NCBI GenBank assembly: GCA_977016875.1
Contig: CDRNST010000308.1
Span: forward strand, 310,001 to 374,000
DNA from: Pavona decussata
Taxonomy: Eukaryota
Length of the DNA stretch: 64,000 bases
Direction of reading: 5' to 3'
The translations under genes and the position numbers were made by a program. A model generated the notes under the pieces. The model searched no databases and had not been told where the DNA came from. It worked only from the letters and a program-made list of their open reading frames with translations. Shown here one piece after another: positions 3,512-62,984 of this stretch. Each line of letters starts with the position of its first letter. Positions within the stretch are counted from its first letter, which is position 1.

Positions 3512-6500
3512 ATGGGATGCTCTGCTTCGTTTCATCATCTTACTTCCTTGAAAAATGCGCTTCCCTCTACGCAAGATTTTAGAACCGTCCCCATTCCTTT
3601 CTCACGCAAGACTAAGGACACCTTACGAGAGTCCTGGGAACTTGTTGAACCAGTTAAAATAGAGGCGGGAAAAGCAATGTTTATGAAGTAAGTCAAACCC
3701 ATATAACCTTGTTAGGGGGGGGGGGGGGGTTAGTTTCTAAAAAAACTGTGGTGCTGTGCAGGTGTGTGTGTGTGTATGGTGTGGGGCGGGGGGGTGCATG
3801 GGAGGGGAGGGGAAACGAATGTTTACTTTTATCCAGAGTTGATAAGGTAATTTGATCACTGTAAAGATATCAGTCGAGAGCTGGCGCCTCGAGCGTTAGC
3901 CCTTCGTCAGAGTAAATAGCCCTATCAGTCGAACCATCAGAAATATTTTGGAGGCGTTGTGTTACATGAATCAAAGCTACTGAGCAAAATATTCCTGTGG
4001 TACTCTTCGTTATGATGGTTCTAACATCTGTATCCTTATGTTTGAAATTAAAGGTAGTTAAATATACCTTTCCTCTGGTCCTTTTCGTTTGCTGTACAAG
4101 GTGGTCCTGTATAGGTCTGTGTGTACAGCGGGTAGCTACGTCCCTGGATGGGGTTATATAACTAAATGACGATCGACTATTAGAGTGTTGGTGTTTTTGT
4201 TGTAATAGAGGGCTCCATAAAGAATTTTCTGCACAATTAGATGTCGAGGGAGATTGCAAACTTTGACTTTGGAAAAGTAGACGGCCAAAATTACAAAAAA
4301 AAAAACAACTAAGTAGCTAAGTAGTAACGACCATTTCTTTACTTTTAGACTCTTCCAGACACATCCCAATATCCAAGACACCTTCCCGTCATTCAAAGGT
4401 GTCACCCTTGATGAAATGATGAACTCGCGTTCGCTGTATCTTCACGCCAAACGAGTCATGGCCGCTGTAGAACAAACTATCTGCTCTTTAGATGACGCCG
4501 AAGTCTTAATTGAGACTCTTACGAAACTGGGTCGAAGACACCAGCCATGGTCCATCAATGAGGAGCATTTTAAGGTAAATAAGTTTATTGTGGTTTGCAT
4601 TCGGTCTGCATCGGAGCTTGTAACGACAAACTATGTCGGGGACGATCATTATTTGACAAGCGTGGTCTGGGATAATGTTTCTCCGGGTTTCAGTTCTGGG
4701 CCAATCCTCGCATCATTTGCCAGTCCGAGAATCAGATCACCTTTCTGAGTATTGTTTGTTGATTTTGATCTGTTTCTGATTCTGTCAGAAAACTCAATGT
4801 TAGCCTCCTGTCAACACGACTTAGTGGCTGGCATCTTTATCTATTGAATTGTATTGTGCATCTTTACTCAGTGATATGAAGGGTTCATCAGATTTGATTA
4901 CGAGTACCAGATTGAGTACGAGTACGACGTTTCAGATCTGGTTTTCTTGGTTTGGGTAACCGATGGTCACACCAATCCTGTTTTTGAGGTCTCCTTGTGT
5001 GCTGGTAAACAACGGGAAATGGGCAACAGTTCTGGGGATGTGACTGATTTGAAATATAAAAGTCGTATTCGTACTCAATCTCGTACTCGTACTCTGATCT
5101 GAAGGTCCCTAATTTATTATGTCTTGGCGGGACCCGGTTTTATTAAAGATTTAAATATTGATAGAAATAACCTATCTTTTACTACTTTTTGCTAAACCAT
5201 TCTCAGCGATTAAAACTGTTCAATTCAATGTTGTGCTAAATGCATTCCATTTATTACTTACTCACACCAAAGATAACTGGTCGCTAGCATTGGGGAACTA
5301 TTTACCACACATTACAGTGAACAATCTCGGAGTTTCTAGAAATTTTATCCGACTTTTATTTCAAGGGAGGCGGCAACTCAATTTCGAGGGAGAAGGCAAC
5401 TCAATTTTTAGGAGGCGGCGTGGTCCAACGATTTAGCGCACTGGACTTGAAATCCGGAGTCCCCGGGTTCAAGCCCCGTCCTTGGCCACGCTTGTATATA
5501 GCTAGCCTGCCAGTTGGGATTTTTTGAAACCTGTTATGTTTAATTTTATTATTTGTTTCCGTTATTTCTGAGTGGAATGCCTGTAAACCAGCTTTGGGTA
5601 GCTAATTGGATTGCCATTATAAAATAAAAAAAAGAAAAGAAAAGAGAATCACCTAAATTAGCCATTCCTCTGGGGAAGGGGAGCGGGATAGTCCTCGGAA
5701 TTTTTGTTGGGGGTGTTCGGCTCGGTTCTTCTATTTCAGACCAAAATATGTAATTTTTCGGTACCCATTATCAGACCTGGGGCCCGTTTCTCGAAAGACC
5801 GGTAACTTATCGGGCCCGATAAGTGTCTTTGGTAATAAACTGTTTCTAAACAGAAGTCAATTTTTGTTAGCTTTGAATACTAGATTTTTAAATCTTACAA
5901 TTTTATGAAAACATTGGCCAAGTATCATGTCTGTAATCACTGTGTAATCGGCGAAAATAACATTTAAAAATATACTTATCGGGCCCGGTTAGTTACCGGG
6001 AGTTTCGAGAAACGGGCTTCTGGACCGTCTATAATCCATACCCGTTTCTATAAAATCCATACATATTTTCAGACTTTCAGACCAAAATCTTTTGGCTGCA
6101 CATACCTTTTAATATAGCTTACATATCGAAAGATCCTCGCAGTTGTAACGCAACTTAAGCAGTTGCGAAAAGAAAGCCTGAAAAAAATTCAGGCTTGAAA
6201 GGGATGCCAGCGCAGTGCTCTATATATAGCTCACATAGGAAAGTACCCTCGGGGCCATTCCCCTGTACCGTCAAATCTGTAAACTGTCAAACTGAAGCTG
6301 AGAAACATAAGAAAACAGAGGAGAGGTAATTAATTTTGTGTACAGATAGCTAAACTGATCGATGATGACTTTGATGCAATAACTCTAAAACTTAAACACC
6401 ATAAGATAAAAAGTATCTAATTGATACATGCCGTTTCCTGTTACCCTTTTCTACACTTTTCGTACTACAACAATCTACACTTTTCATTTCTTTCCCTTCT

Positions 6501-30708: not shown

Positions 30709-33164
30709 TTATAAACTTACTATAGCCTTTTAATATAAAAATGTTCAAAAGCGCTTTAAAAAAACATTAGTAAATAGACTAGATAAAAACGAAACAAAAA
30801 TTCCTAGGCTTCTTTGAAACTTTGAAAGTAAACAAAAGAAATATTAAAAACTACTAAAAACTAGCTAAAAGCTAACCTAAAAAGATAAGCTTTTATATAT
30901 TTCTTAAAAGCGCCAAGTGGTTCTATCTCACGGATATGCGCGGGAAGGCTGTTCCACAGCCTAGGTGCGCCAGCGTAAAAAGAACAAGCGCCCAAAGTTG
31001 TGAGCATGTAATGTAGAGGTCTTCACCGTCATCCGTTCGCTAAGCACGCTCTTTTTCTTTTTCTTTTTCAAACCTTCCCAAATAATTTTCTCTTCCATCG
31101 TAAGCAGTGCCCAACTCGAAAGTAGCATGCTCCTTTGGGCACTGCTCACACTAAACCAAACAAATTTATCCTAATTCTTTTTAATCCTCCTTGTAATATA
31201 AATGTTTATTTTTTTTATGTATTGTATTGAATCTCGTTGTACGTGTGAAAAATGAAATTGAATTGAATTGAATTGTATGCGCCAGGCCCCTCTGGACGAT
31301 CTAAAAATATTGTATAATTCGATTGCAATGAATATGCAGAACAGGACCTAATGCTGACTTAAAAGTGATAATTGATATTTTAAAATTGTGTGTAGGATGC
31401 TGACGCACGTGCCAGCTGTGTAAATTTGCACAATTCCTGATTAATACGAGGCAAAGCCAGCTTGATGAGTCATTATAGTATTTTTAGGTAAGGCCAATAA
31501 AAGTTAATGGACCCGATACCTAACTTCTCTAAAAAATTCAGAAGGTGATTCCAATGCCACAGGTTCGTGAAAGCTTGTAAATAGCCGCCCACTTTCTTCC
31601 AAAAAACCCTTTGCCCTTCCCTTCAAGTTTTAAGTTCTAGTCAGAGTTTCTATAGAAGAGACAGTCTCCATTTAAAAAGGAACAATTTACAATATTGCAT
31701 TTTGTCCACTGTTTATAGATTCTTTGAAACCAATCCAGAATACCAGCGACTATTTCCAGAGTTTAAAGATGTACCTCCCTCGGAGCTGGAAAAAACGAAC
31801 GCCTTATATGGGCATGCTAAGAGAGTAATGAAAGCTGTAGAAAATGCGGTGTCTGCTTTGGATGACGCGGAGAGTTTTGGCGCGTATTTAGAAGAGCTGG
31901 GGCGGAGGCATAAAACTCGAGCCTTGAAACCAATCTACCTTGATGTAAGTCCAAAAAGCAAACACACCTTAACATTTGCTTTCAACTACTATTTTGTGGA
32001 CTCCATCGTGTCTAGATCTTATTTGAAGAAATGTTTTACAATCCAATTCAATCGTCAATATGGCTACGTTAAAGGAAACCTCCACTACAATACAATACTT
32101 TATTCATTCTCCCCGAGGGGTTTTTCAGAATAAATTAATAATCCACTCTTGAAAAAAATCAACCTGAAATTGTTGAAAAAGCAATCTAGTTACAAATTTC
32201 GTTGGAAAACATGGAAATAATTTTTCTGTATCGGACAAAACAGGATTTGATTATCGCCCATTTTCCCTTTAAATTTCCCGGGCGTCACAATCTTGGATAA
32301 CGTAATACGGTTGCTCAATTGTTTCACTCAAGACAACTTCTGCTTACTGACAATAGCGGCAACCGTATGACGTCATTAAAACAAAAATGGCGACGCCCGG
32401 GAAATTTAAAAGCGAAAATAGGGGATAATCATACCTAATTTTTAATATACTTGAATGTTATTCCTACTTTTGAAGCTAAAATTTTAGAATTTAGACGCTA
32501 TTTGCAACAATCTAATTTAATTTAATTTGCTGTCGGAATGGAGGTTCCTTTAAGGCCAAAGATAAAGCCCAAACTGTAACTTGTGTCTTCAGCTCCGAGA
32601 CCAACATGCACATTCTTCTCACTGTTCTCTAGAATTTTCTTGTGGTTCTAGTTAGGAGAATTTGTTTAAACATCAAGCTTTGGCGATGACGTCCATTAGT
32701 CCTATTACAGTTAATTCCATTCACAAACATCAGGCCATAAAGTTGGTCATATTACAAATGAGTGCTTAAATAGACGGGGTTTTAAGTGAGAAAAAGGCTG
32801 CACGTATGACGAGGTTGGTTGTTAATCAGCAAACTCTACTCCAAAATGCGAGGTGAATCCTACTCTCCAGTCTCCCTCTCTCCACCGAAAAATGCCAGAT
32901 CAACCGGTAGATAGCAAATATAACTTCTGTTTCAGTCGACAAATTGTGAGGTGTACTTTCCTCTCCGCTCCTCCACACAAACAACGAAACATACTAGATA
33001 ACGGTTTAATATTAAATACTATTTATTTCCAGTCCATGCAAACCGCTTTGATGTCCACTCTTGAAGACTTGCTTAAGTCAAGCTGGACCCAGGAGACCGC
33101 GGAGGCCTGGAACAAGCTGTTTGAGTTTGTCAAAGATAAGATGATTCTTGGCCTGCAGTCATAG
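27294..33164 (+). CDS. Globin 4, N-acylated globin X/neuroglobin-like, 167 aa; exons 27294-27439, 31719-31944, 33033-33164
   Basis: MGCGSSASRKSQ...VRETWEIVDLHKNSVGKKTFMK|FFETNPEYQRLFPEFKD...ALYGHAKRVM...LGRRHKTRALKPIYLD|SMQTALMSTLEDLLKSSWTQETAEAWNKLFEFVKDKMILGLQS*. Canonical splice sites. Confidence 0.95.
30676..30995 (-). mobile_element. L2-like LINE 3' end with (TTA)n tail, in globin 4 intron 1
   Basis: APRLWNSLPAHIREIEPLGAFKKYIKAYLF on the minus strand, followed by 3' UTR and a microsatellite tail. Confidence 0.7.
32073..32549. mobile_element. Kolobok-like MITE in globin 4 intron 2
   Basis: TTAA|AGGAAACCTCCA ... TGGAGGTTCCT|TTAA, with an internal inverted repeat at ~32249-32430. Confidence 0.8.
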
Positions 33165-34362: not shown

Positions 34363-37300
34363 TTAAGTGTCTTGCAGGCCTATTTTTATTGCTACAAACA
34401 TAAATTGGAATAAAGCACTCCAGGCTTCAAATGTTTCTGTTGTCCACTTTGACTGAAAGAGTTCCTTTAATGACGTCATCAGTGCTTCGTGTATCACCTA
34501 AGGTTGAGAAACAAGAATATTAAATGGCTGACTGAACAAAAGAACGAACGAAAGAAAGAAATGAACAAAGGGAAGAAAGGATGAATATATGGCTGAAGGG
34601 ATGGATGGTTTAAGAAAAAAAGAATATGAAAAATAAAAATAATGAAAGACCTAAGGGAAGGAATGAACGGATGAATGAAAAAATGAACGAGCGACCGAAC
34701 GAATGAATGAAAGAATTGATGAACGAACGAAGAAAGGAATGAATGAATACATAAATGTATGAATGTACGAGNNNNNNNNNNNNNNNNNNNNNNNNNNNNN
34801 NNNNNNNNNNNNNNNNNNNNNNNNNNNNNNNNNNNNNNNNNNNNNNNNNNNNNNNNNNNNNNNNNNNNNNNNNNNNNNNNNNNNNNNNNNNNNNNNNNNN
34901 NNNNNNNNNNNNNNNNNNNNNNNNNNNNNNNNNNNNNNNNNNNNNNNNNNNNNNNNNNNNNNNNNNNNNNNNNNNNNNNNNNNNNNNNNNNNNNNNNNNN
35001 NNNNNNNNNNNNNNNNNNNNNNNNNNNNNNNNNNNNNNNNNNNNNNNNNNNNNNNNNNNNNNNNNNNNNNNNAATGAACGAATGGACCAGTGAATGAAAG
35101 AACGAACGAACGAAAATTGAGAGCAGGGGATCAGGTTCCGTTTATACAAGATCCACTCTGATTCACTCTCAAGAAAGAGTCACTTATTAGACAGCGAAAT
35201 GCTCACTCACACCTTGCAGAATGCAGCGGTTTTCTGTCCTCTAAAGCAATTTTTTTTCGAAATCTTGACGCACCGCACTCTTAGACAAGTCGGTGCTCTT
35301 AGCATTGTTAACTTCATCTCAAGTAAAATTTGATCTCACCTAATAATCGTTGCAATTTGACAGCAAACAATACCTCCTCCAGATTTTACGACAATGTAGT
35401 CACCGACACAACACTCACCTCCAAGTACTGAGCTTTAAGTGGTCTGACCTGATGTCTTCGTCCAAGTTCCACCAGGTAACTAACAAAGCTTTCACTGTCA
35501 TCCAAGGAAAGTACTGCGTTTTCAATACACTTCATGAGTATCTTACTATGGCCGGACAGCGTCCGCGTTGATTTGAGCTGCTCAATGTCAACCTTCCCAG
35601 GAAACATGTGCATCAACTCGGGTCTTGCTTCAAAAACTCTGTAGAGAAAGATGAAGTGTATACTAAATTAGTGAAATGAGTCTCGCTATGTTTACAGCAC
35701 GAGAATGAATCTTTATTCCTAATCAGTCATGTAAGCCTGCTTTCTCGTGACATCTTTTATAACAGCTCCAGAACTGCGGGGGCGGATTTTTTTTGGGAGG
35801 GGGGGGGGGATGGAGAAGGGTGGAGGGGCCCGCCCCCTTTTGTATATCTAAAAAGTTTTTGTAATCGTCTTTCGAATGGTGTTATGAAATCAATCATTTT
35901 TAAAAATCCTCTTGCACTCTTGCCACAGTTTCGTCGGCTCCCTCTTTATGGATTTTCTGGATTGAAGTGTAACTGTTGAGAGCAAACAATTAGGGAGGAA
36001 GACAAGCGTCTACTTTTTCACGAGAACGTAATCAAATTACAACTTTATAGGTGTTTTTCACACGTAATAATAACCATTGCCAATCATAGTTTCGTTACAA
36101 CAAAGGCTCTGTTACTTCTCGGAGTTTTCAGAGGAATCGGGCAGTATTCTGCCAAAGCAGTAAAAAAAAAAACTTTGTCAGAGGTTGCAACTACGCGAGC
36201 CAGTTTCTTTGAAAATTTGTTTCAAATATTTTGACTTGTTCGTCTGCGATAGGCCAACTAGTTGTTAAAAGGTGAACCGGGTTTTTTCTATATATCTAAA
36301 AGAGAAAACTTGTTAAAGGAAAACTTGGCCGATATTACCATACACACCAGAACATAAATCTTGCAGATTTTTATAACTAGCTGCCTGTTTAGAATTCTCA
36401 CATGTAACACGGCCTTTTATCGAATGCATGGAGCGGCAGTTGTGTTTAAGTGCGAAACTGCTCGGCGGAGAGACCGACTACATTTGATCTTCAGATCTGC
36501 AAGCAAAATCTGTTTTATTCTATAAATATTCCATTACATTTTTAATAAATAAAAATAAATAAACTATTGCAGTTTACAAGAAGGATGCTATTACTAATAT
36601 ATTCAATGGTTACTGTACGCGTTAAGGAGATTTTAGCCTTTCAGGTGAGAGACAGTCTGGCTGCACTCTCTTACATTATTTTACGTCAGGTAACTCAAAT
36701 GCATCAGCACAGCATTTTCAGAGTAAATTTCACTGACATTTTTTTGTAGCGAGTTCAACGTTTTTGTTTGTCAGAACTCCCCCTTGGGGGTACTCTTCGT
36801 AATTTTTGCTGGGGGTGAGCGACCGGTTCTCCAAACCCTGATTCTATTTCAGACCAAAACATGTATAAATTTTGCGATAGCCTTTTTCAGACCCGACCTC
36901 TCAAACTCGTACCCATTTTTAAACCTGGTTTGCATAATCCATAGCTGCAGTTTCTGTTAAATCCATAACCGTTTTCAGACTCAAAAATCATACATACCCT
37001 TAGGGGTCGCACGTACCTATTTAGGTTATATGGGAGAACATCCCCCCGCCATCTTGGGCATCAGACATGCAGATATTAAACTTGAGATCTCCGAGATTTA
37101 CTTGATGGGATTTCCAAATTATAGACATTTTTAGTAACAACGAGGTTGTAAAAGTATGCTCGTGACATTTCCTTGAAATTCAAATATTCGAAAATGTTCT
37201 TGATTTAGGACGACAAAAATCAATTGAATCTTGTCTGTCAGCAAACGTCACTCAAAACTCCAACCAACTGGCCAGTAATAGGTTCGGGTCACGTGCAATC

Positions 37301-41503: not shown

Positions 41504-41761
41504 ATGAAGCCACATTTCTGGTTGTCGGTTGCGTTTCTGATGTCCCGGATCGGTCTCATTGAAGCCGCTGGTCAATGTCGCGCGGGAGATACCACCGTTA
41601 ATGGAATGTTCCTCCAAGGTCACACGTTTAAAACAGTTCAGGCTGGAAATCCTGCGATATGCATGATGAGATGCGAGGAAGAGGTCAGATGCCAGAGTTA
41701 TAACTTTGTCATTGGTCCAAATATTTGTGCGCTGAACGACAGAACAAAAGAAGCCAGGCCT
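41504..41761 (+). pseudogene. Truncated copy A of the PAN/apple secreted-protein gene (signal peptide + most of PAN exon only)
   Basis: MKPHFWLSVAFLMSRIGLIEAAGQC...CQSYNF...CALNDRTKEARP, then homology to copies B and C breaks off at about 41761. No splice donor, and exons 2 and 3 are absent before the next copy. Confidence 0.85.
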
Positions 41762-42053
41762 CAACGCGCAAAACGTGACGACATAGAACGCAGACCCACA
41801 ATTGCATTATTCATTACTTATTACTCTTGAGAACTCAGACAGAAAGGACATTTCAGACGACACATGGCCGTTATTTTGGACGAAACCTCTTTGACGCATT
41901 ACCGATGACATTTGGTCTTTACAGGCTAAGTTACTCACAAAACTGTCTTGGTATTTCATCTATTCAGTTTTTCATCCACTGTTATTATATTAGATAAGAT
42001 TATTTGCATATTTCAATCTTGTTTATAAGACTGTGTGTCTTATTGCATAAGCA

Positions 42054-45000
42054 CAAAATGACTAGCTCCCAGTTGGCTTGCGCACCCGGAATCGCAGAGA
42101 TCCTGTGTTCGACTCTCGTTCAAGCCTGAATTTATTTAAGGCTTTCGTTTTTTGTACATAGCTGGAATGGTCCTTAATCTATTCAGTCTTTCACCCGTTG
42201 TTGATATATTAATGATTATTAATGTATTTTACTCTCATTTATAGCATTAGCAATAGACCATTCTGGATCAAGTTGCTAATAACCTCATTATGAAAAAGAG
42301 GTTTCGTGCGAAGGACCATTCTAAAAGGCCTACACTAAGATACGAACGCTTGTCACTCCAGATTGCTGTAGGTTGGGTATTACAGTTTATGGTTGAATGG
42401 CCTCCCACACACTTTGTCCAAGGGAAAGAAGTATATGCTTTTACATACTTCATACATTATGGGTACCTTTGACGGACTAACATCTCAATAAGGATTTGGG
42501 GGGGGGGGGGGGAAGCTGTAATGACCACCCACTTGGCTACTGAAGTCGAAAGGCAACGGGAGTCTTGAGTAATCTAGTTTCCAGAAATCTTCTTTACTGT
42601 GCTATCATCTGACGCTACACACACTAAAATAACCAGAAATACGTGACTCGCAAAACCTCGCGAAGCTGGGGCTGGGTGGAAAGCCCTCTTTACTCGTATT
42701 GTAGCATCAAATGAGGAGATTAAAAGGGGCATAGGAATTTTTTTTGATGAGCATGGTCTTTTCGTAGTTCCACAGGCTAGTTTGCGGTTGAAAAGCTATT
42801 TCTGACGCCACGTAATGTACAACAGGCGTGCAGCGCTGTCGAGTTCGATGAATTTATTTCCCACGGAAAATTATTTTACCGCGACCACAAAACGTGTAAT
42901 TTCTTCAATGCAATCTTGCACAAAAAAGATTTCTAAAAGAAAGGGAAAAGATTCTGGAGAGATAGTTCTGTATCCAGTGAATATTGATGAACATTGCAGT
43001 TGAAATTTGATCATGCACGCATATTTTTTCTGATGTATGCAAATTTTGCTCCAGACGACGCCAGACAGTCTGGCGTCATTCATACTTTGTTTTTTACTGT
43101 TGCCAGGCAACAGTGCGGACACCTTCAAAGATATAAACATATACACATATATATAAATATATTTTTCGCTCGAATTCGCGCGGCTTAGCTCCGCTCGGGC
43201 CGGCTCGGCCCGACAAATTTATTAACCTCGCTTCGCGAGGAAAAATACAGAGTTAAACTTGTCTGGCTAAGTTTTAGTTGTGCAGACCTAGAAGACATTT
43301 CCAGAAGGCATGGTCGACGGAAGAAGTTCCTTAACCCGATATGCTCGTTACTTGGGTCCTTTTTTTTTTTCAAGTAAAGCTAAAGCTATAGACTCAGCCT
43401 TGCCTTGATATTAGATAGAGCGCATGTCAAGCGTCGCTGAGATGCAGCCTTAGCGTGAAATCGTTTTCTGCAGTGAGTGACAAAGGGTTGGCCGTAACAG
43501 CTAGTATGAGAATCTCTGGTTTATTTCGCTTTTGTATCCTCTTCCTATAGATCTCTCAGCATTTAAAGTGTTTCAAAGGTTTTTATATTCCTTGCATTCA
43601 ACTTTGAAGGTGCCGCCGTGTTAAAGAGAACCGGTCCAAAGGCATGAAAAGAATATCGGTGAAAGTTGCTTTGAGAATTATATTGGATACGATGCACTGC
43701 ATGCGAGATGTGCCTATATCTTGTCAAATGGGAAGTGGAGAGACATTTTCTATTTTTATTCCTTATCAACGGGTGTATATAAAGAGAGAGTCTGAAAAAC
43801 ACGAAATTGAAAATGAGGGTCTCAATGGGTGATAGCTTTGACGGTTGACAGTTACATTTTAATATTGACTTTTCTGTTTTTTAATATTAAAAATTGTGTT
43901 CTAGAGGTTAGTTTGTGGTCAGAAAATAGTTATCAATGCAGTAAATTATTAAGTGGCAAAGACCATAAAGTCTATATATTTCGGAACATGCAGGAAATTG
44001 GTTTACCAGTTAAAATGATTCTTTGAGAGCCAGACGTCTGGCTGACGGTTAAACCCATTAAGACGCTCGAAAATGTGTCTAGAAAGTGATAATTTTAGAC
44101 ACGATATTGAATACTCTTGTTATTTTAGTCACCATTCAGCAGGCTGAAGGAAGTTCACTCCTTTGAATAAATATTATCATTCATTATTTATCGTTTAAAA
44201 ATTACTCGAAAACTCGGCCTCAATTGTGAATTAATTGTTTTATGTTTGGGTCGGATAATACACAATTATTAGCAGCGAAACTACTCCTGCAGGGCGTCTG
44301 CTGTGACCCTTTACATGAAGAAATTGAAATATCCTGTTTTCCCCCGCCTCCTGCCGCCTTAGGGTTCAGTAGGGAAGCGTCCTCTATCGGTTCTTTCGCG
44401 AGTCTCTAGCGCACTAATTCTTTATCACATTTATTTATTTATTATTTAAATTCCCTTACTTTATATTTAAAACTTCGTCTGATGATTTCACAGATTTTGC
44501 CGAAATATAAACTTATTCTTCGTTTCCTGTTTTCGGTTTTTGTGTTTTGCCTACATTGGAGACAATACACTGAATACACGATATCACCTTTATCATTAAT
44601 TACTGAAAATAATCAGCTGGAAATGGAATTCTAGCTGGATCATATTGGAAAGTTACCTTGTATCCAAGGAATTATAACGAAAACGAATTTAACTTCGGCC
44701 AATAAGAGCACCTTTATTGCTTTGACGCGAGTGAAAACAAAATGATATGCATAAATTTGACACAGTCAATATGCAACAAGGAAGTAACTTTATGTGGTAT
44801 TTAATTCCTCCAGCATTTTGGCGATATCTCCCCTGTCATTCTCATCTCTCCGAAATTTTCTTTCCTTTCGACATTCTTAGCGCTGAAAGGTACAAAAGAT
44901 AGCTCGAGTCATATTTTGACGGTCACTGCTGTCTTAGATCTCCAAAGCCTTTTCAGTGGAGTAACGGATACTGGTGAGTGCGTTTCCATTTCTGTCGTGT

Positions 45001-45842
45001 TAAACCTCGAAACTGATTTTCGTTTCACTTAACTTAGTTCCACAACGATAGTTCACTTACTTTAAGATTTTTTAAAGCCTTTAACTTTTGGATTTAGTGT
45101 CAATAGTACTTTCGGTTATTTTCAGGCGTATTTCTTCCATCCCATTCTTTTCTGTCTCTCTTTTATCCTCCATGTGGTCCGTGTGGCTCGGGGAACCCAA
45201 AGTATATATTTCAAACCCAAAAAAGTTTTATCTTTCAAGGTTATTCAGCTGAAACTAAACTGAATATTGTATCTAATGATAATTTTAATCTCTGCGTAAT
45301 ATGGAAGTCTGTTCATGGTGCCATGAGGACGCCGAAACGTTGTAAATGTGATTCTACCCGTAATTTTCATAATCAAATTATCATTATTACCACTATTACT
45401 ATTATTAATATTAATATTTATCTATTTATTTATTTATTTATTTATTTGTAACTGTAAAGTAATTGCACCATCTTGATCAATCTCCTATATGTCTTGTGCC
45501 ATATATAAAAGCCCCTGGCTTCGGCATCTCAATTTCGATTTATTACTTATTACTGTGTACTCTCTCGTATGATTGTTATGAATAAAGAGCATTGCGAGTT
45601 TGCCTGTGTCATTACCGAATGATAAATCATTCTCATTTGTTCACCAGGCTTAAAATATTACATTCACATTTCCTTTCATTGCGCATATGCCACTCAATGA
45701 CATTCCAATCCTAGCAGTATGCAGGATGTTTGTCCCATGAACCTAGTTTAATGACCTTAGCTCCCACGAGTCTTCTGTAGCTCAGTGGCAGAGCATGCGA
45801 ACTAGTAGTCGGAAGGTCTTAGGTTCGACTCCTGATAGGAGC
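42054..45842 (+). repeat. Segmental duplication, copy 1 (paralog of ~49581-52734)
   Basis: Colinear blocks; 44005-45307 is nearly identical to 50371-51675. Copy-specific indels. Confidence 0.95.
45771..45842 (+). tRNA. Duplicate tRNA-Thr(AGT)-like sequence fused to PAN copy B
   Basis: Paralog of 52663-52735; its 3' flank and terminator are replaced by PAN exon sequence. Confidence 0.5.
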
Positions 45843-45872
45843 GTCCCAGACAGATCCACATCCTCACCAAAG

Positions 45873-48107
45873 ATGAATCCACATTTCTGGTTGTCGGTTG
45901 CGCTTTTAATGTCCCGGATCGGTCTCATTGAAACCGCTGGTCAATGTCGCATGGGAGATAACTCCGTTAATGGAATGTTTCTCAAAGGCCACACATTTAA
46001 AACAATTCAGGCTGGAAATCCCGCAATACGCATGATGAGATGTGAGGAAGAGGTCAGATGCCAGAGTTATAACTTTGTCATTGGTCGAAATATTTGTGAG
46101 CTGAACGACAGAACGAAAGAAGCCAGGCCTGAGGACTTCATACCAGATGATCAACGAATCTACATGAGGCGCACATTCAACCGAGGTGATAATTACAAAA
46201 ATTGTATGTTGCTTGATCACGTGGTTAGTGTACCCTGGTTAGACAGAAATATACTTTCTCTTACTCTCTCTCTCTCTTGACTTGTTTGTGTTAAGTTTTA
46301 TTCATACCTTACGTGCAGTTAACAGTTTGGAAAACATATATCAATCAGGGTTTCGATCGAGTCATGGACCTTTTTCATAAATTGCGGCCGATTTATCATT
46401 CCTTTCAATATGTGTTAATTAGCCCTACTAACCTCGTTTTAGAGTAAAAATTCCATTGAATTTTGCACATGCTAACGAGGCTAGTAAGGCTAATTTCTAT
46501 GAAAATAAAAGAATAATTTACCGGCTGCCATTTATGACAAAAGGTCTCTTGCAACACCACAGTTTTACTTGATGCTACCAATCAGTGATACTTCAACATT
46601 GACAATGGTTTAGTCACCTCCGTTGGTTTTCTTGATCAAAGCTTTTGACACGATCGATCATGGTATTTTAATGGGTAATTAAGTCTTTTCGGCGTTTAAA
46701 ACAATTCCATTTGCTGGTTCAAATCATATCTCACCATCCAGCAACAGAGACGCCGAGTTTAAAAAAGTATACATTTTTTTGTGGTGTACGTCAGAGATCA
46801 ATATTAATGCCTTTACTTTTGTTATATACATTTAAGACTTTCTTTGTATTGCGGCTCTTTTAGTACTTTAGAAAAAGCGATCAGTAATGAACTAGTCTCT
46901 ATTGGTTTGTAGCAAATAAATTGAGCCTAAACGTCGTTAACTCTATCTAGACTTTTGGCTTTTTTTTCTGTGTGTGTTCTGGGACCCGTGGGACATACGT
47001 CCTAAGATGTTTCGTTTGAGGGTCACAACAGGTAATGGTGACGTCGTAATTACGTCATGATTTCCAAATGGCGACCATCTTGGATCTGTCATCTTTTATT
47101 TTTTTGTGGATTTCCCCAAAACTTCTGAAATTGAACGAAAAATAATCAAGCTCAATATGAGCTAAAACATTACAGTAAGAGTGAATTAATTGTCATGGTA
47201 ACATCAAAGTTAAAGAACACTTACCGACCACAACAAACCCAATAAACAGAGTTTTAAGGCCAGGAGTGGATATTAGCGAAAAACATATTTGACAATAATA
47301 CTGGTGCTGAGTGTTTGCTTCGAATTACTCATACTTCTTGGTATCGCATTCATTCTTTTATTACGCAGAGCGATTAGGCTCAATTCAAGATCTTCCTGCC
47401 GAGTCATGTAGCGAAATCAAGGCAAGTGAAAGAAACAAAATGGCTACCAGCGAGTACTGGATATACTCCGATGGAGAGCCTGGTCAGGCAATCCTGGCTC
47501 GATGCGATGGTACTATATTTAAAGTTTTACATATCAGTAGTAAGGTCTTATGTTCCTGTTGGTTTTGTTCAGAGCAAAAATAACGGCAAGAAAAATTGCT
47601 TTCAATAACATTGTTAATAATTTTTTTTCACTTTCAGACGTTTGGCAAAAAATCAACACAGATCCTGTTTGCTTTGGAGCTCGAAATAACTCTTATGGAG
47701 CCTTCAACATGACAAAGACTGGGAGTGTCAAGACCATGAAGCTCGTTTACAAATCAGGTTCGATTCGCTGCAACCAAAACGGTGATTCATATTGGGGGTG
47801 CAATAGAAATCGAAAGTACGCCAATAAGAGTTTGACAATCATAACAAATACTCACATGACAGCCCTTCTGCCAACCATTGAAGACTTGGAAAGATTGGAG
47901 AGTCTTTGTCAAGGTAAAAAGCATTTCTACAACGTCGAAGGAATTGGGCATAAATCACCCGAGCTGGTGTTTCGCAACCTTCCACGCCCATTGTCTTTGT
48001 CACGATACCAGGAGTTGCAGATATGGTATGGGCAGGACTGGGTAGACTGTTCAGAGGACAACAACAGTGGTGTTACTTGTGTTGATGTTTATGCGTGGTA
48101 CATATAA
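45873..48107 (+). CDS. Secreted PAN/apple + fibrinogen/COLFI-like N-module + uncharacterised C-terminal domain, copy B (307 aa); exons 45873-46185, 47369-47509, 47638-48107; possibly a decaying copy
   Basis: Open spliced frame with phase-1 GT-AG introns. PAN motif C...CQSYNF...CELN, then PAESCSEIKASE...YWI, ending CVDVYAWYI*. One PAN Cys is changed to Arg and the native upstream region is deleted. Confidence 0.8.
46325..46940 (+). mobile_element. Degenerate L2/CR1 reverse-transcriptase fragment in PAN copy B intron 1, interrupted by a MITE
   Basis: YQSGFRS.H...LLDATNQ*YFNIDNG...FLD..AFDTIDHGIL; a matching remnant lies in copy C at ~54345-54437. Confidence 0.75.
46366..46547. mobile_element. 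Fold-back MITE nested in the LINE fragment
   Basis: GACCTTTTTCATAAAT ... ATTTATGACAAAAGGTC; absent from the paralogous intron of copy C. Confidence 0.8.
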
Positions 48108-49580
48108 ACTTCTGCTGGCATAGAGTCGAGATTTAAAAAAGCCTTGTTGCTCTTATCGAAACCAGAAGCGCGCGGCTCCCTGTTATTTGTAGTTTGAGTG
48201 ACATTTACGTCACCGTTTGGAAATTATCATTAAGTTCAAGTAATTCAGTATATGAGTGCAGTCGGACATTGTTGTATAAACAAGATAAAGACAGTTTTAC
48301 TCAATTGTATCATATGTATCATAACGAGTAGATGCTCTAGCAGTGAAGTGCGACGGTAGCCATATTTGTTTTACTCAAGTTACACTTGAATGAGTGTGAC
48401 ATAGCGGGATTGTACTTGTACAGAGTACTAATACACTTCCGAAGCGTACGATGTCCGGATGTTATTTTGTGCATGATTCATGATAATTAGCCAATGCACT
48501 GCATGATTCTAGACTTAAGTTTGTGCATTTAATTCGATTCCTGCAATTTTTTCAGTTTAATTTTATTAATTAAGTAATCTCACATTTTGTAACACATATT
48601 ATACAGTGGTATAGTCAAAAAAGGGTAGTTATAGTTCAAGTTGAAGAAGTTATCCTCTACTTTGAATAAGCTAATTGTCACTGAATCGTCATGCATCGCT
48701 CATCCGCATTATCTCCTCCAATACTTTTTCCACTGTAAGAAATACATAATTTTGTCAATTAATTAAAAGGAAATAAAATAATCGTTAATAAATGAAACGG
48801 TGACAAAACACATACTTGCAAAACATGGACCCAAGCACACTTTGGAACAATTCTTCAGTCACCCATTAGACGTGAGACTCATGCAAAATGTGTGACAAAT
48901 ATGGTGAGCATAATTTTTTATCCATTTAGGTCAGTGATACGTTGGAAACACGATCGAAAAACTACTTTTAATGACATGGAACCTTCATCTCTGAGGCGAA
49001 CCCGAGCCACACTGGTGAGAGGCGAGCGAGTGTCACCACTACGAACGCCGGTTGTAAATGAAGTGTCTGTTCCTTAACCCTTTTTTACCATTTTCGACCA
49101 GGGGGTATTCCCCTCCCGCCTCCATAAATTCGCAACTAGAGAAGCTACGTCCAAGGATGTTTCCTTTGAGGTCCCAAACGGAAAGTAATGATGTCATATG
49201 ATGCGGTAATTACGTTATAATTGCGAAAAGGCGACTATCTTGGATCCGCCATCTTGGATTTCTGGATTTCCCAAAAACTATTAGAAAGCGCCGACACTAA
49301 GCAAACAGTAATCAAAACCAATAAAAGAACACTAATATGAGCTAAAAACGCAAAAAAGGCTTCCATTTTCTCCAAAAAAAACTGCCTGTCAATTTTTCAT
49401 GTATTTCTAGTTATTTAGCGTTATATTACAGTTTACGTATATGTATATACAGTTTGTATTTATACACAGTGTTTCTTTCTTCAACCTGAAGTTCTTGTTA
49501 ATTGCCTGGTTCTGGATTTTGGAGGGTTCAGGTCTCCTCCAAAAGAAAAGGGGGTTTTCCTGACGAGCAGTAGGCACGAA

Positions 49581-62508: not shown

Positions 62509-62984
62509 TTATATGTACCATGCATACACATCAGCACAAGTAAAACCACTGTTGTTTTCTTCCGTATAGTCCACAAAGTCCTGCCCATACCATATCTGCA
62601 AATCCTGGCCTCGTGACAAAGGCAGTGGGCTCGAAAGGTTACGAAATACCAGCTGGGGCGAATTGTGTTCAATCCCTTCAAGACTGTAAGAGTGACCTTG
62701 TATTAAGTGTCCCTTAGCATCTCTTCGCGCTTCCAAGTCTCCGCTGGGTGGTAGTAGGGCCTTTGCGTCTGCATCTGTAATGATTGTCATCAACTCTTGG
62801 TTGGCATATACGCTATACGGGCAGCCCCAATAGGAATCATCGTCATCGTTACATTTTACTGAACCCGTTTTGTAAACGAGCTTCATGGTCATGACACGCC
62901 CAGTCTTTGTCATGTTGAAGGCGCCATAAGTATTATCTCGAGCTCCAAAGCAAACAGGATCTGTGTTGATTTTTTGCCAGACGT
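62509..62984 (-). CDS. Terminal exon of a fourth, inverted family member (copy D); upstream exons presumably lie beyond the window
   Basis: ag|(D)VWQKINTDPVCFGARDN...TCADVYAWYI*. Same phase-1 acceptor as copies B and C, no internal stops. Confidence 0.88.

Follow-up and report, generated by a model that had tools for sequence, protein, structure and literature searches.

What does a coral encode in a cluster of genes whose first exons are much alike and whose last exons lie far apart? The question is raised by a 64,000-nucleotide stretch of Pavona decussata DNA (GenBank assembly GCA_977016875.1, contig CDRNST010000308.1, positions 310,001 to 374,000 of the forward strand; hereafter the window, with positions counted from its first letter). 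A sequence-only reading of this stretch had proposed a birth-and-death family of diversifying secreted recognition proteins, built on a C-terminal domain that it could not name, and had pointed to PAN and fibrinogen-related modules as mediators of recognition. Our analysis points to part of a tandem array of putatively secreted three-module proteins, in which a PAN/apple domain and a short module resembling the fibrillar collagen C-propeptide (COLFI) precede a predicted lectin domain. The model for this last domain is AJLec, a Ca2+-dependent, β-galactoside-specific lectin of Anthopleura japonica with a novel jelly-roll fold (PMC6070535). At a probability of about 0.68, we read the array as part of a family of putatively secreted PAN/COLFI-like/AJLec lectins with diversified sugar-site loops, which may form a recognition repertoire.

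Gene structure and domain identity

Splice junctions were read straight off the sequence, using a six-frame list of open reading frames and tblastn of the copies against the window, and signal peptides were judged by eye. The window contains three intact lectin genes (A and B on the forward strand; C on the reverse strand, with its last exon only) and one truncated PAN exon. Each gene consists of three exons, encoding a signal peptide with a PAN/apple domain, a 47-amino-acid weakly COLFI-like module, and a 155-amino-acid last exon that holds the entire lectin domain. Introns are phase 1 with GT..AG ends in all gene models. Exons 2 and 1 of gene C lie past the window end, at approximately window-equivalent positions 65112 and 68112 (locus L034). 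The exons within the window are as follows.

45873-46185, forward strand: gene A exon 1, start codon, putative signal peptide and PAN/apple domain (Pfam PAN_1, 27.3 bits), with a phase-1 end at a GT donor
47369-47509, forward strand: gene A exon 2, 47-amino-acid two-cysteine COLFI-like module (splice sites; sub-threshold COLFI match)
47638-48107, forward strand: gene A exon 3, complete AJLec-type lectin domain with variable loops 1-3 and stop codon (phmmer match to PDB 6a56_A, E 8.4e-25; acceptor site)
53946-54258, forward strand: gene B exon 1, signal peptide and PAN/apple domain (Pfam PAN_1, 35.9 bits; alignment with A, C and the truncated copy D)
55585-55725, forward strand: gene B exon 2, COLFI-like module (splice sites; COLFI E 1.1e-4, 22 bits, below the 26.2 cut-off)
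56925-57391, forward strand: gene B exon 3, AJLec-type lectin domain and stop codon (phmmer match to 6a56_A, E 3.1e-19; acceptor site)
62509-62984, reverse strand: gene C last exon, AJLec-type lectin domain and stop codon (phmmer match to 6a56_A, E 7e-24; acceptor site)

The predicted protein of gene A has 307 amino acids, which is also the length of proteins annotated as "uncharacterized" or "Apple domain-containing" in Orbicella, Acropora, Stylophora, and Oculina; related protein models from Montipora and Desmophyllum have other lengths. Relatives of this kind mark the genome as a stony coral's. A longer annotated isoform of a 307-amino-acid family member is found in Stylophora pistillata (P0139, LOC111346456 isoform X1, 421 amino acids), where the PAN domain starts at residue 147 and the N-terminal extension of about 114 amino acids is without a Pfam match. 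Searches were run exon by exon, with public full-length orthologues (P0082 from Orbicella and others) representing the whole protein.

The last exon matches no Pfam family at E values up to 1, either in the window exons or in the full-length orthologues, and it is for want of a Pfam model that the sequence-only reading was unable to name the domain. It can be assigned by other means. Each of the three window exons, searched singly, matches 6a56_A over residues 6-164 of 164, and a profile built from 22 family members matches one PDB entry, 6A56 (AJLec), at E 3.8e-34. An AlphaFold model of residues 100-307 of P0082, made from a 120-sequence alignment, has a mean confidence (predicted local distance difference test, pLDDT) of 85 overall, rising above 88 in its lectin portion; this relative is 63% identical to the lectin exon of gene A. 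The Foldseek search that had been suggested returns 6a56_A as the top match of this model (template modeling [TM] score 0.81, root mean square deviation 2.4 Å, E 1.7e-11), with the next match below a TM score of 0.3. On sequence, profile, and model evidence, we thus assign the last exon as an AJLec-type jelly-roll lectin domain, the small jelly-roll fold being predicted via the Orbicella relative. The homology extends over the whole 160 amino acids, with about 29% identity between AJLec and the modeled relative. The domain is therefore a known, structurally solved type of lectin and not a new kind, and it matches a characterized lectin where the sequence-only reading had left room for a family without a recognition role. 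Coral homologues were noted in 2018, when the AJLec authors listed 7 Nematostella and 29 Stylophora homologues, all uncharacterized (PMC6070535), and a 2023 review describes AJLec homologues as confined to cnidarians.

The two upstream modules are of unequal clarity. Exon 1 of genes A and B scores above the Pfam PAN_1 (PF00024) gathering cut-off of 21.4 bits, and full-length orthologues do the same. In 15 of 21 members, exon 2 matches COLFI (PF01410) at sub-threshold scores (best E 2.3e-4), with a top score of 22 bits against a cut-off of 26.2 and coverage of only profile positions 21-75 of 233. Its AlphaFold confidence is low (pLDDT 48-69), and a profile search of the PDB retrieves no solved structure for it, the one match (E 0.92) being meaningless. 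The likeness to the fibrillar collagen C-propeptide consists of an "SC.EIK...YWI...C" pattern with two cysteines at profile positions of about 21-75; only a quarter of the COLFI domain is covered, and the remaining coral protein is AJLec-like. We weakly label the exon COLFI-like and nothing beyond. The fibrinogen-related module of the sequence-only reading finds no counterpart, since Fibrinogen_C is not matched at E values up to 1 in any exon or in the full-length orthologues.

The sugar site and the variable loops

The sugar site of AJLec is formed by helix 3 and the β3-β4, β4-helix 1, and helix 3-β7 loops. Its Ca2+ ion is held by Glu141, Asp150, Asn151, and the main-chain carbonyls of Cys48 and Met147; galactose is hydrogen bonded by Arg64 and makes hydrophobic contacts with Phe67, Tyr97, Phe103, and Met147. 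According to the AJLec authors, homologues retain the Ca2+ ligands and differ in the residues that contact the sugar (PMC6070535). These site residues were transferred to the coral family through HMMER alignments.

All motifs and loop strings that the sequence-only reading had quoted from the last exon are present where it placed them, and its picture of conserved ends around three variable loops holds family-wide: in alignments of 22 and 120 sequences, loops 1-3 appear as nonconserved, indel-bearing columns between invariant framework residues. Loop 1 is the stretch directly after the Cys48 position, loop 2 starts at Cys61 and includes the Arg64 and Phe67 positions, and loop 3 includes the Tyr97 position and ends at the equivalent of Phe103. 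Loops 1 and 2 thus correspond to named binding-site loops of AJLec, and loop 3 is aligned with its sugar-contacting Tyr97.

The frame around these loops is retained. The columns of Cys15, Cys48, Cys61, and Cys156 are kept in 119 to 120 of the 120 sequences, A, B, and C included, and by analogy with the pairing in AJLec the intrachain disulfides Cys15-Cys156 and Cys48-Cys61 are probably conserved. In the 120-sequence family alignment, Asp142 and Asn151 do not vary at all, and Glu148 hardly varies. The second, structural Ca2+ site (Asn21, Asp142, Asn145, and Glu148 in AJLec) is kept in A, B, and C as Asn, Asp, Asp, and Glu. Family members also carry a cysteine in loop 3 that covaries with the cysteine of a "DC" motif adjoining the Met147 position (both present in 101, neither in 14, and mixed in 5 of the 120), which implies a candidate third disulfide that AJLec lacks; gene C has neither cysteine of this pair. 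Together with the Cys48-Cys61 bridge between loops 1 and 2, the predicted loop-3 disulfide would tie loops 1-3 to the metal-site segment, which supports one contiguous variable surface.

The sugar site itself is altered. All three window copies have Gln for Glu141, as do 115 of the 120 members, and Asn at the Asp150 position, which is non-acidic in 83 of the 120 (Asn in 64 and Gly in 13) and Asp in 34. Because these two replacements change two of the three side-chain ligands of the sugar site in the window copies, Ca2+-dependent sugar binding by their products is not assured. Where AJLec has Arg64, gene A has Asn, gene B has Pro, and gene C has a deletion; the Phe67 position is a conserved Tyr, that of Phe103 a conserved Phe or Tyr, and Tyr97 aligns with the loop-3 cysteine. 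Membership in the AJLec fold family holds, but the galactose specificity of AJLec should not be transferred. The dimer-forming Cys3-Cys122 disulfide is absent, the Cys122 position being Ser or Leu and the Cys3 segment having been replaced by the fusion to exon 2.

These changes, with the loss of the dimer cysteines and of a conserved Arg64, would also fit a domain that keeps the fold but has lost Ca2+-dependent sugar binding, acting as a variable protein-binding or matrix or mucus scaffold in a protein whose main binder is the PAN domain. PAN/apple domains bind proteins as well as carbohydrates. We nevertheless regard this alternative as quite improbable: the site retains Asn151, Asp142, Glu148, and its disulfide frame, and selection falls on exactly the groove residues (see below), which a functional ligand site would lead one to expect. 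In C-type lectins, moreover, Ca2+ is coordinated by Gln and Asn side chains of the QPD and EPN motifs. Variation in sugar contacts alongside retained Ca2+ ligands is also what the AJLec authors saw in homologues (PMC6070535).

Selection on the lectin exon

For 24 intact lectin exons we built a codon alignment and a maximum-likelihood tree under GY94+F3x4, and fitted site models with a purpose-written likelihood on this tree, fixed up to a scale factor; the implementation reproduces the IQ-TREE M0 likelihood exactly (-5074.62). The comparison of M1a with M2a gives a likelihood ratio test (LRT) statistic of 45.8 (p 1e-10), with 13% of sites at a dN/dS ratio (ω) of 2.8, and that of M7 with M8, the check proposed for positive selection in the loops, gives 59.1 (p 1.5e-13). 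The summed posterior weight for ω>1 amounts to 17.7 of the 38 loop codons against 4.1 of the 125 framework codons. The highest-scoring aligned site is the equivalent of Arg64, and the framework sites that are flagged, equivalents of Met147, Lys154, Thr47, and Arg22, lie at or beside named site residues of AJLec. A second line of evidence comes from eight phylogenetically independent close pairs, in which dN/dS is 1.61 in the loops (58 nonsynonymous versus 10 synonymous changes) against 0.51 in the framework, with similar dS in both (Fisher p 0.003).

Twelve genes served as a control: in their PAN exon ω>1 is not supported (LRT 1.5, p 0.46), and in their lectin exon the LRT reaches 37.8. Codon models thus place ω>1 in the sugar-site loops, and the framework and the PAN exon are under purifying selection. 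Loop variation that is neutral and spatially scattered, which had been named as an outcome that would speak against a recognition family, is not what we observe: site models and close pairs both concentrate ω>1 in the loops of the AJLec sugar site.

Could the loops of an AJLec-type lectin simply be under relaxed constraint, with ω>1 arising as an artifact of indel misalignment and gene conversion? The averages lean that way. Under a partitioned M0 model, mean ω is 0.80 in the loops versus 0.42, which is not above 1, so that ω>1 is seen only in site models and close pairs; the close-pair loop value of 1.6 is by itself not significantly greater than 1 and draws on only about 10 synonymous changes. 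The loops are also rich in indels, and the exon-specific histories described below show recombination in the family. Yet the LRT is still significant on gap-free columns alone (18.3, p 1e-4), the similar dS of loops and framework in close pairs makes the excess specifically nonsynonymous, the PAN exon lacks the signal under the same recombination, and the highest-ranking sites fall on positions where AJLec contacts its ligand (Arg64, Met147, and residues after Cys48). We therefore consider relaxed constraint unlikely and continue with positive selection on the loops as the preferred explanation.

Ages of the PAN and lectin exons

Amino acid identity among the copies is 83-87% in the PAN exon, as the sequence-only reading had remarked when it called this exon highly similar, 70-91% in exon 2, and 60-66% in the last exon. 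Among A, B, and C, dS is 0.16-0.22 in exon 1 and 0.60-0.74 in exon 3, and dN/dS is about equal in the two (0.29-0.57 versus 0.30-0.38). Stronger purifying selection as the cause of the PAN likeness is ruled out by these values, with equal dN/dS and a three-fold lower dS; the PAN exons are alike because they coalesce more recently and not because they are more tightly constrained. Compared with other clusters of the family, exon 1 of A, B, and C stands at dS 0.6-1.3, as distant as exon 3; the three lectin exons thus date back roughly to when the clusters parted, and the three PAN exons are young by comparison.

Tree topologies are in line with this difference in depth. The exon 1 tree unites A, B, and C at 100/100 on a long stem. 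The exon 3 tree does not unite them, and B pairs with a gene on contig C91 at 90/89; an approximately unbiased test on exon 3 does not reject monophyly of the three (p 0.18). Beyond some 20-175 bp from the exons, the introns can no longer be aligned, in agreement with an old duplication. For exon 2, the pair A-C has a dS of 0.20. Gene conversion or unequal exchange limited to the 5' part of the genes, extending to exon 2 for A-C, is probably responsible. We infer it from the depth of dS and the 100/100 clade of exon 1, topological conflict between the exons not being proven.

A different situation is observed in the young array on contig C49. There, dS is low in every exon, and ω is about 0.7-1.1 in the lectin exon versus 0.2-0.4 in the PAN exon; with dS equal, the stronger constraint on the PAN exon is a case of true differential selection.

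Size and turnover of the family

A six-frame search of the 602-Mb assembly, the genome-wide count that had been called for, yields at least 101 AJLec-domain matches, nearly all of them single open exons and some broken. The close subfamily comprises 26 matches with 54-77% identity to gene A, arranged in tandem arrays on contig C308 (five copies, including the three of the window) and on contigs C49, C114, C108, C126, C91, and C151. Other matches belong to more distant arrays with 32-48% identity.

Decay is visible alongside this expansion: stop codons interrupt two close copies, several exist as fragments, and the PAN exon is broken in one C49 gene. These pseudo-exons and fragments show gene death in the family. 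A further relic probably lies in the window itself, outside the span covered by the sequence-only reading.

41504-41782, forward strand: copy D, a lone 3'-truncated PAN exon (tblastn, DNA alignment, and blastn)

Copy D shares 83-87% identity with A and B, but the similarity breaks off about 55 bp short of the exon end, and no exon 2 or exon 3 homologue follows downstream. At another locus on the same contig (L032, C308:399210-401439), two AJLec-type exons stand on the same strand only 1.3 kb apart, one of them 77% identical to the lectin exon of gene A yet containing a TGA codon, and no PAN or exon-2 homologue was detected in the 7.5 kb upstream; the pair may represent alternative 3' exons or include a duplicate that has died.

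Might the variable copies as a whole be decaying pseudogenes, their variation being decay? Besides the stops and fragments, expression was not demonstrated in public RNA-labeled runs, in which gene A is covered over exons 1 and 3 by short, mismatched contigs of 60-250 nucleotides without a splice joint, probably from paralogues or related corals. This explanation has very little probability in our view. Genes A, B, and C have intact frames and conserved phase-1 GT..AG junctions, framework ω is about 0.16-0.5 with invariant cysteines and metal-site residues, and full-length 307-amino-acid orthologues are annotated in at least six coral genera.

The lectin exon is also combined with different N-terminal partners. 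Members of the C114/C108 clade (L036-L040 and L042) retain exon 2 and mostly lack a PAN exon, and those of the C126 clade (L046 and L050) have neither, in both cases with 8 kb upstream examined; a relative from Oculina (P0038) has an EGF domain ahead of the lectin domain. The exon thus appears to have been shuffled among N-terminal modules, and phase-1 introns would have made such shuffling easy.

Weighing the recognition reading

Taken as a whole, the reading we prefer runs as follows. The window holds part of a tandem array of putatively secreted three-module lectins, each paralogue of which may bind a different glycan or other surface ligand through its diversified groove. In that case the array would supply microbe or symbiont recognition from the germline, as a set of soluble pattern-recognition lectins that duplication, loss, and positive selection keep renewing. 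Its 5' PAN exon would be kept alike by a more recent shared history, probably gene conversion, next to lectin exons that are old and divergent. The birth-and-death recognition family of the sequence-only reading gains from the lectin match, from ω>1 in the loops, and from the evidence of gene death; the likeness of the PAN exons that it had remarked reflects younger coalescence and not tighter constraint.

Several points weigh against this reading, in addition to the replaced metal ligands, the missing dimer disulfide, the loop averages, and the RNA contigs given above. Recognition function, binding, secretion, and expression are all deduced from the genome sequence. The clustering of the loops in three dimensions is taken from the published description of AJLec and the disulfide pattern. 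As for the selection tests, branch lengths were carried over between site models up to one scale factor, and such tests can be inflated by misalignment in loops and by recombination among tandem paralogues, the latter being evident here.

A broader version of the reading extends it to a cnidarian-specific, germline-encoded, hypervariable AJLec repertoire of at least 100 domains in stony corals, in which conversion homogenizes the PAN exon, the lectin exon escapes it, and contact loops are driven apart in the service of discriminating symbionts from pathogens. We put this forward only tentatively, as a possibility that we would not ourselves favor.

Neighboring sequence in the window

Some further features of the window were noted. 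Two tRNA-like elements were identified by ARAGORN, at 45771-45843 on the forward strand, stopping 30 bp short of the gene A ATG, and at 56374-56447 on the reverse strand, within intron 2 of gene B. Upstream of about position -30, gene A lacks the homology that B, C, and D have in common, and it looks as if a tRNA-derived short interspersed nuclear element had replaced its proximal promoter. The upstream regions of A and B (44580-45842 and 50946-52734) have in common blocks of 730 bp (96%) and 555 bp (93%), located at unequal distances from the ATG, which are probably a dispersed repeat, separate from the gene unit that was duplicated. On the upstream side of the lectin cluster, globin-like motifs ("GHAKRVM...LGRRH") were recognized by eye in open reading frames on the forward strand at 4416-4748, 31702-32133, and 32853-33164, which suggests two globin genes. 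A run of 301 N at about 34770-35070 is an assembly gap or masked sequence.

Relation to other lectins and implications for corals

The coral proteins and AJLec share a small jelly-roll fold (predicted for the corals), both intrachain disulfides, Asn151, Asp142, and Glu148, the placement of the binding-site loops, and membership in a cnidarian-restricted family. They differ in organization. AJLec is a single-domain protein of 186 amino acids that forms a dimer linked through Cys3-Cys122, whereas in the corals the lectin domain is fused behind PAN and COLFI-like modules and lacks Cys3 and Cys122. The coral domains further have Gln for Glu141, mostly Asn for Asp150, no Arg64, and mostly an extra, predicted loop-3 disulfide, and they belong to a family of at least 100 exons whose site loops are apparently positively selected. 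Outside cnidarians, PA-IL/LecA of Pseudomonas aeruginosa resembles AJLec in its small jelly roll and similarly placed Ca2+-dependent galactose site, but has no sequence homology to it, and the AJLec authors see convergence (PMC6070535). PA-IL/LecA is absent from the Foldseek matches of the P0082 model.

With regard to organization, the coral family may be compared with diversified immune lectin repertoires of other invertebrates, such as snail FREPs, amphioxus VCBPs, and expanded C-type lectins, which consist of multicopy, tandem, secreted proteins whose N-terminal module is constant and whose C-terminal, ligand-binding domain varies. The folds, in contrast, are unrelated, as the coral proteins have no Fibrinogen_C, Ig, or Lectin_C match in Pfam, and the coral diversity is germline paralogy that implies no somatic diversification. 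In the literature searched, including papers that mention AJLec, we did not find the PAN/COLFI-like/AJLec architecture, the size of the expansion, the concentration of apparent positive selection in sugar-site loops with the specificity-determining Arg64 position, or the exon-specific history.

Through these findings, hundreds of coral proteins annotated as "uncharacterized" or "Apple domain-containing" gain a structure and a probable function, and a lectin fold is flagged for which Pfam has no model. The homogenized 5' exon next to a diversifying 3' exon offers a clear case of exon-specific evolution in a tandem array. Lectin-glycan recognition is a leading candidate for the mechanism by which corals distinguish pathogens from beneficial bacteria and Symbiodiniaceae. 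The family described here provides concrete, testable candidates, with a solved structural template, a defined binding groove, and a natural series of paralogues that differ in groove residues at the positions setting sugar specificity in AJLec. If the broader version of our reading is true, the coral repertoire would be a functional analogue of the snail FREPs on an unrelated fold, sorting symbionts from pathogens.

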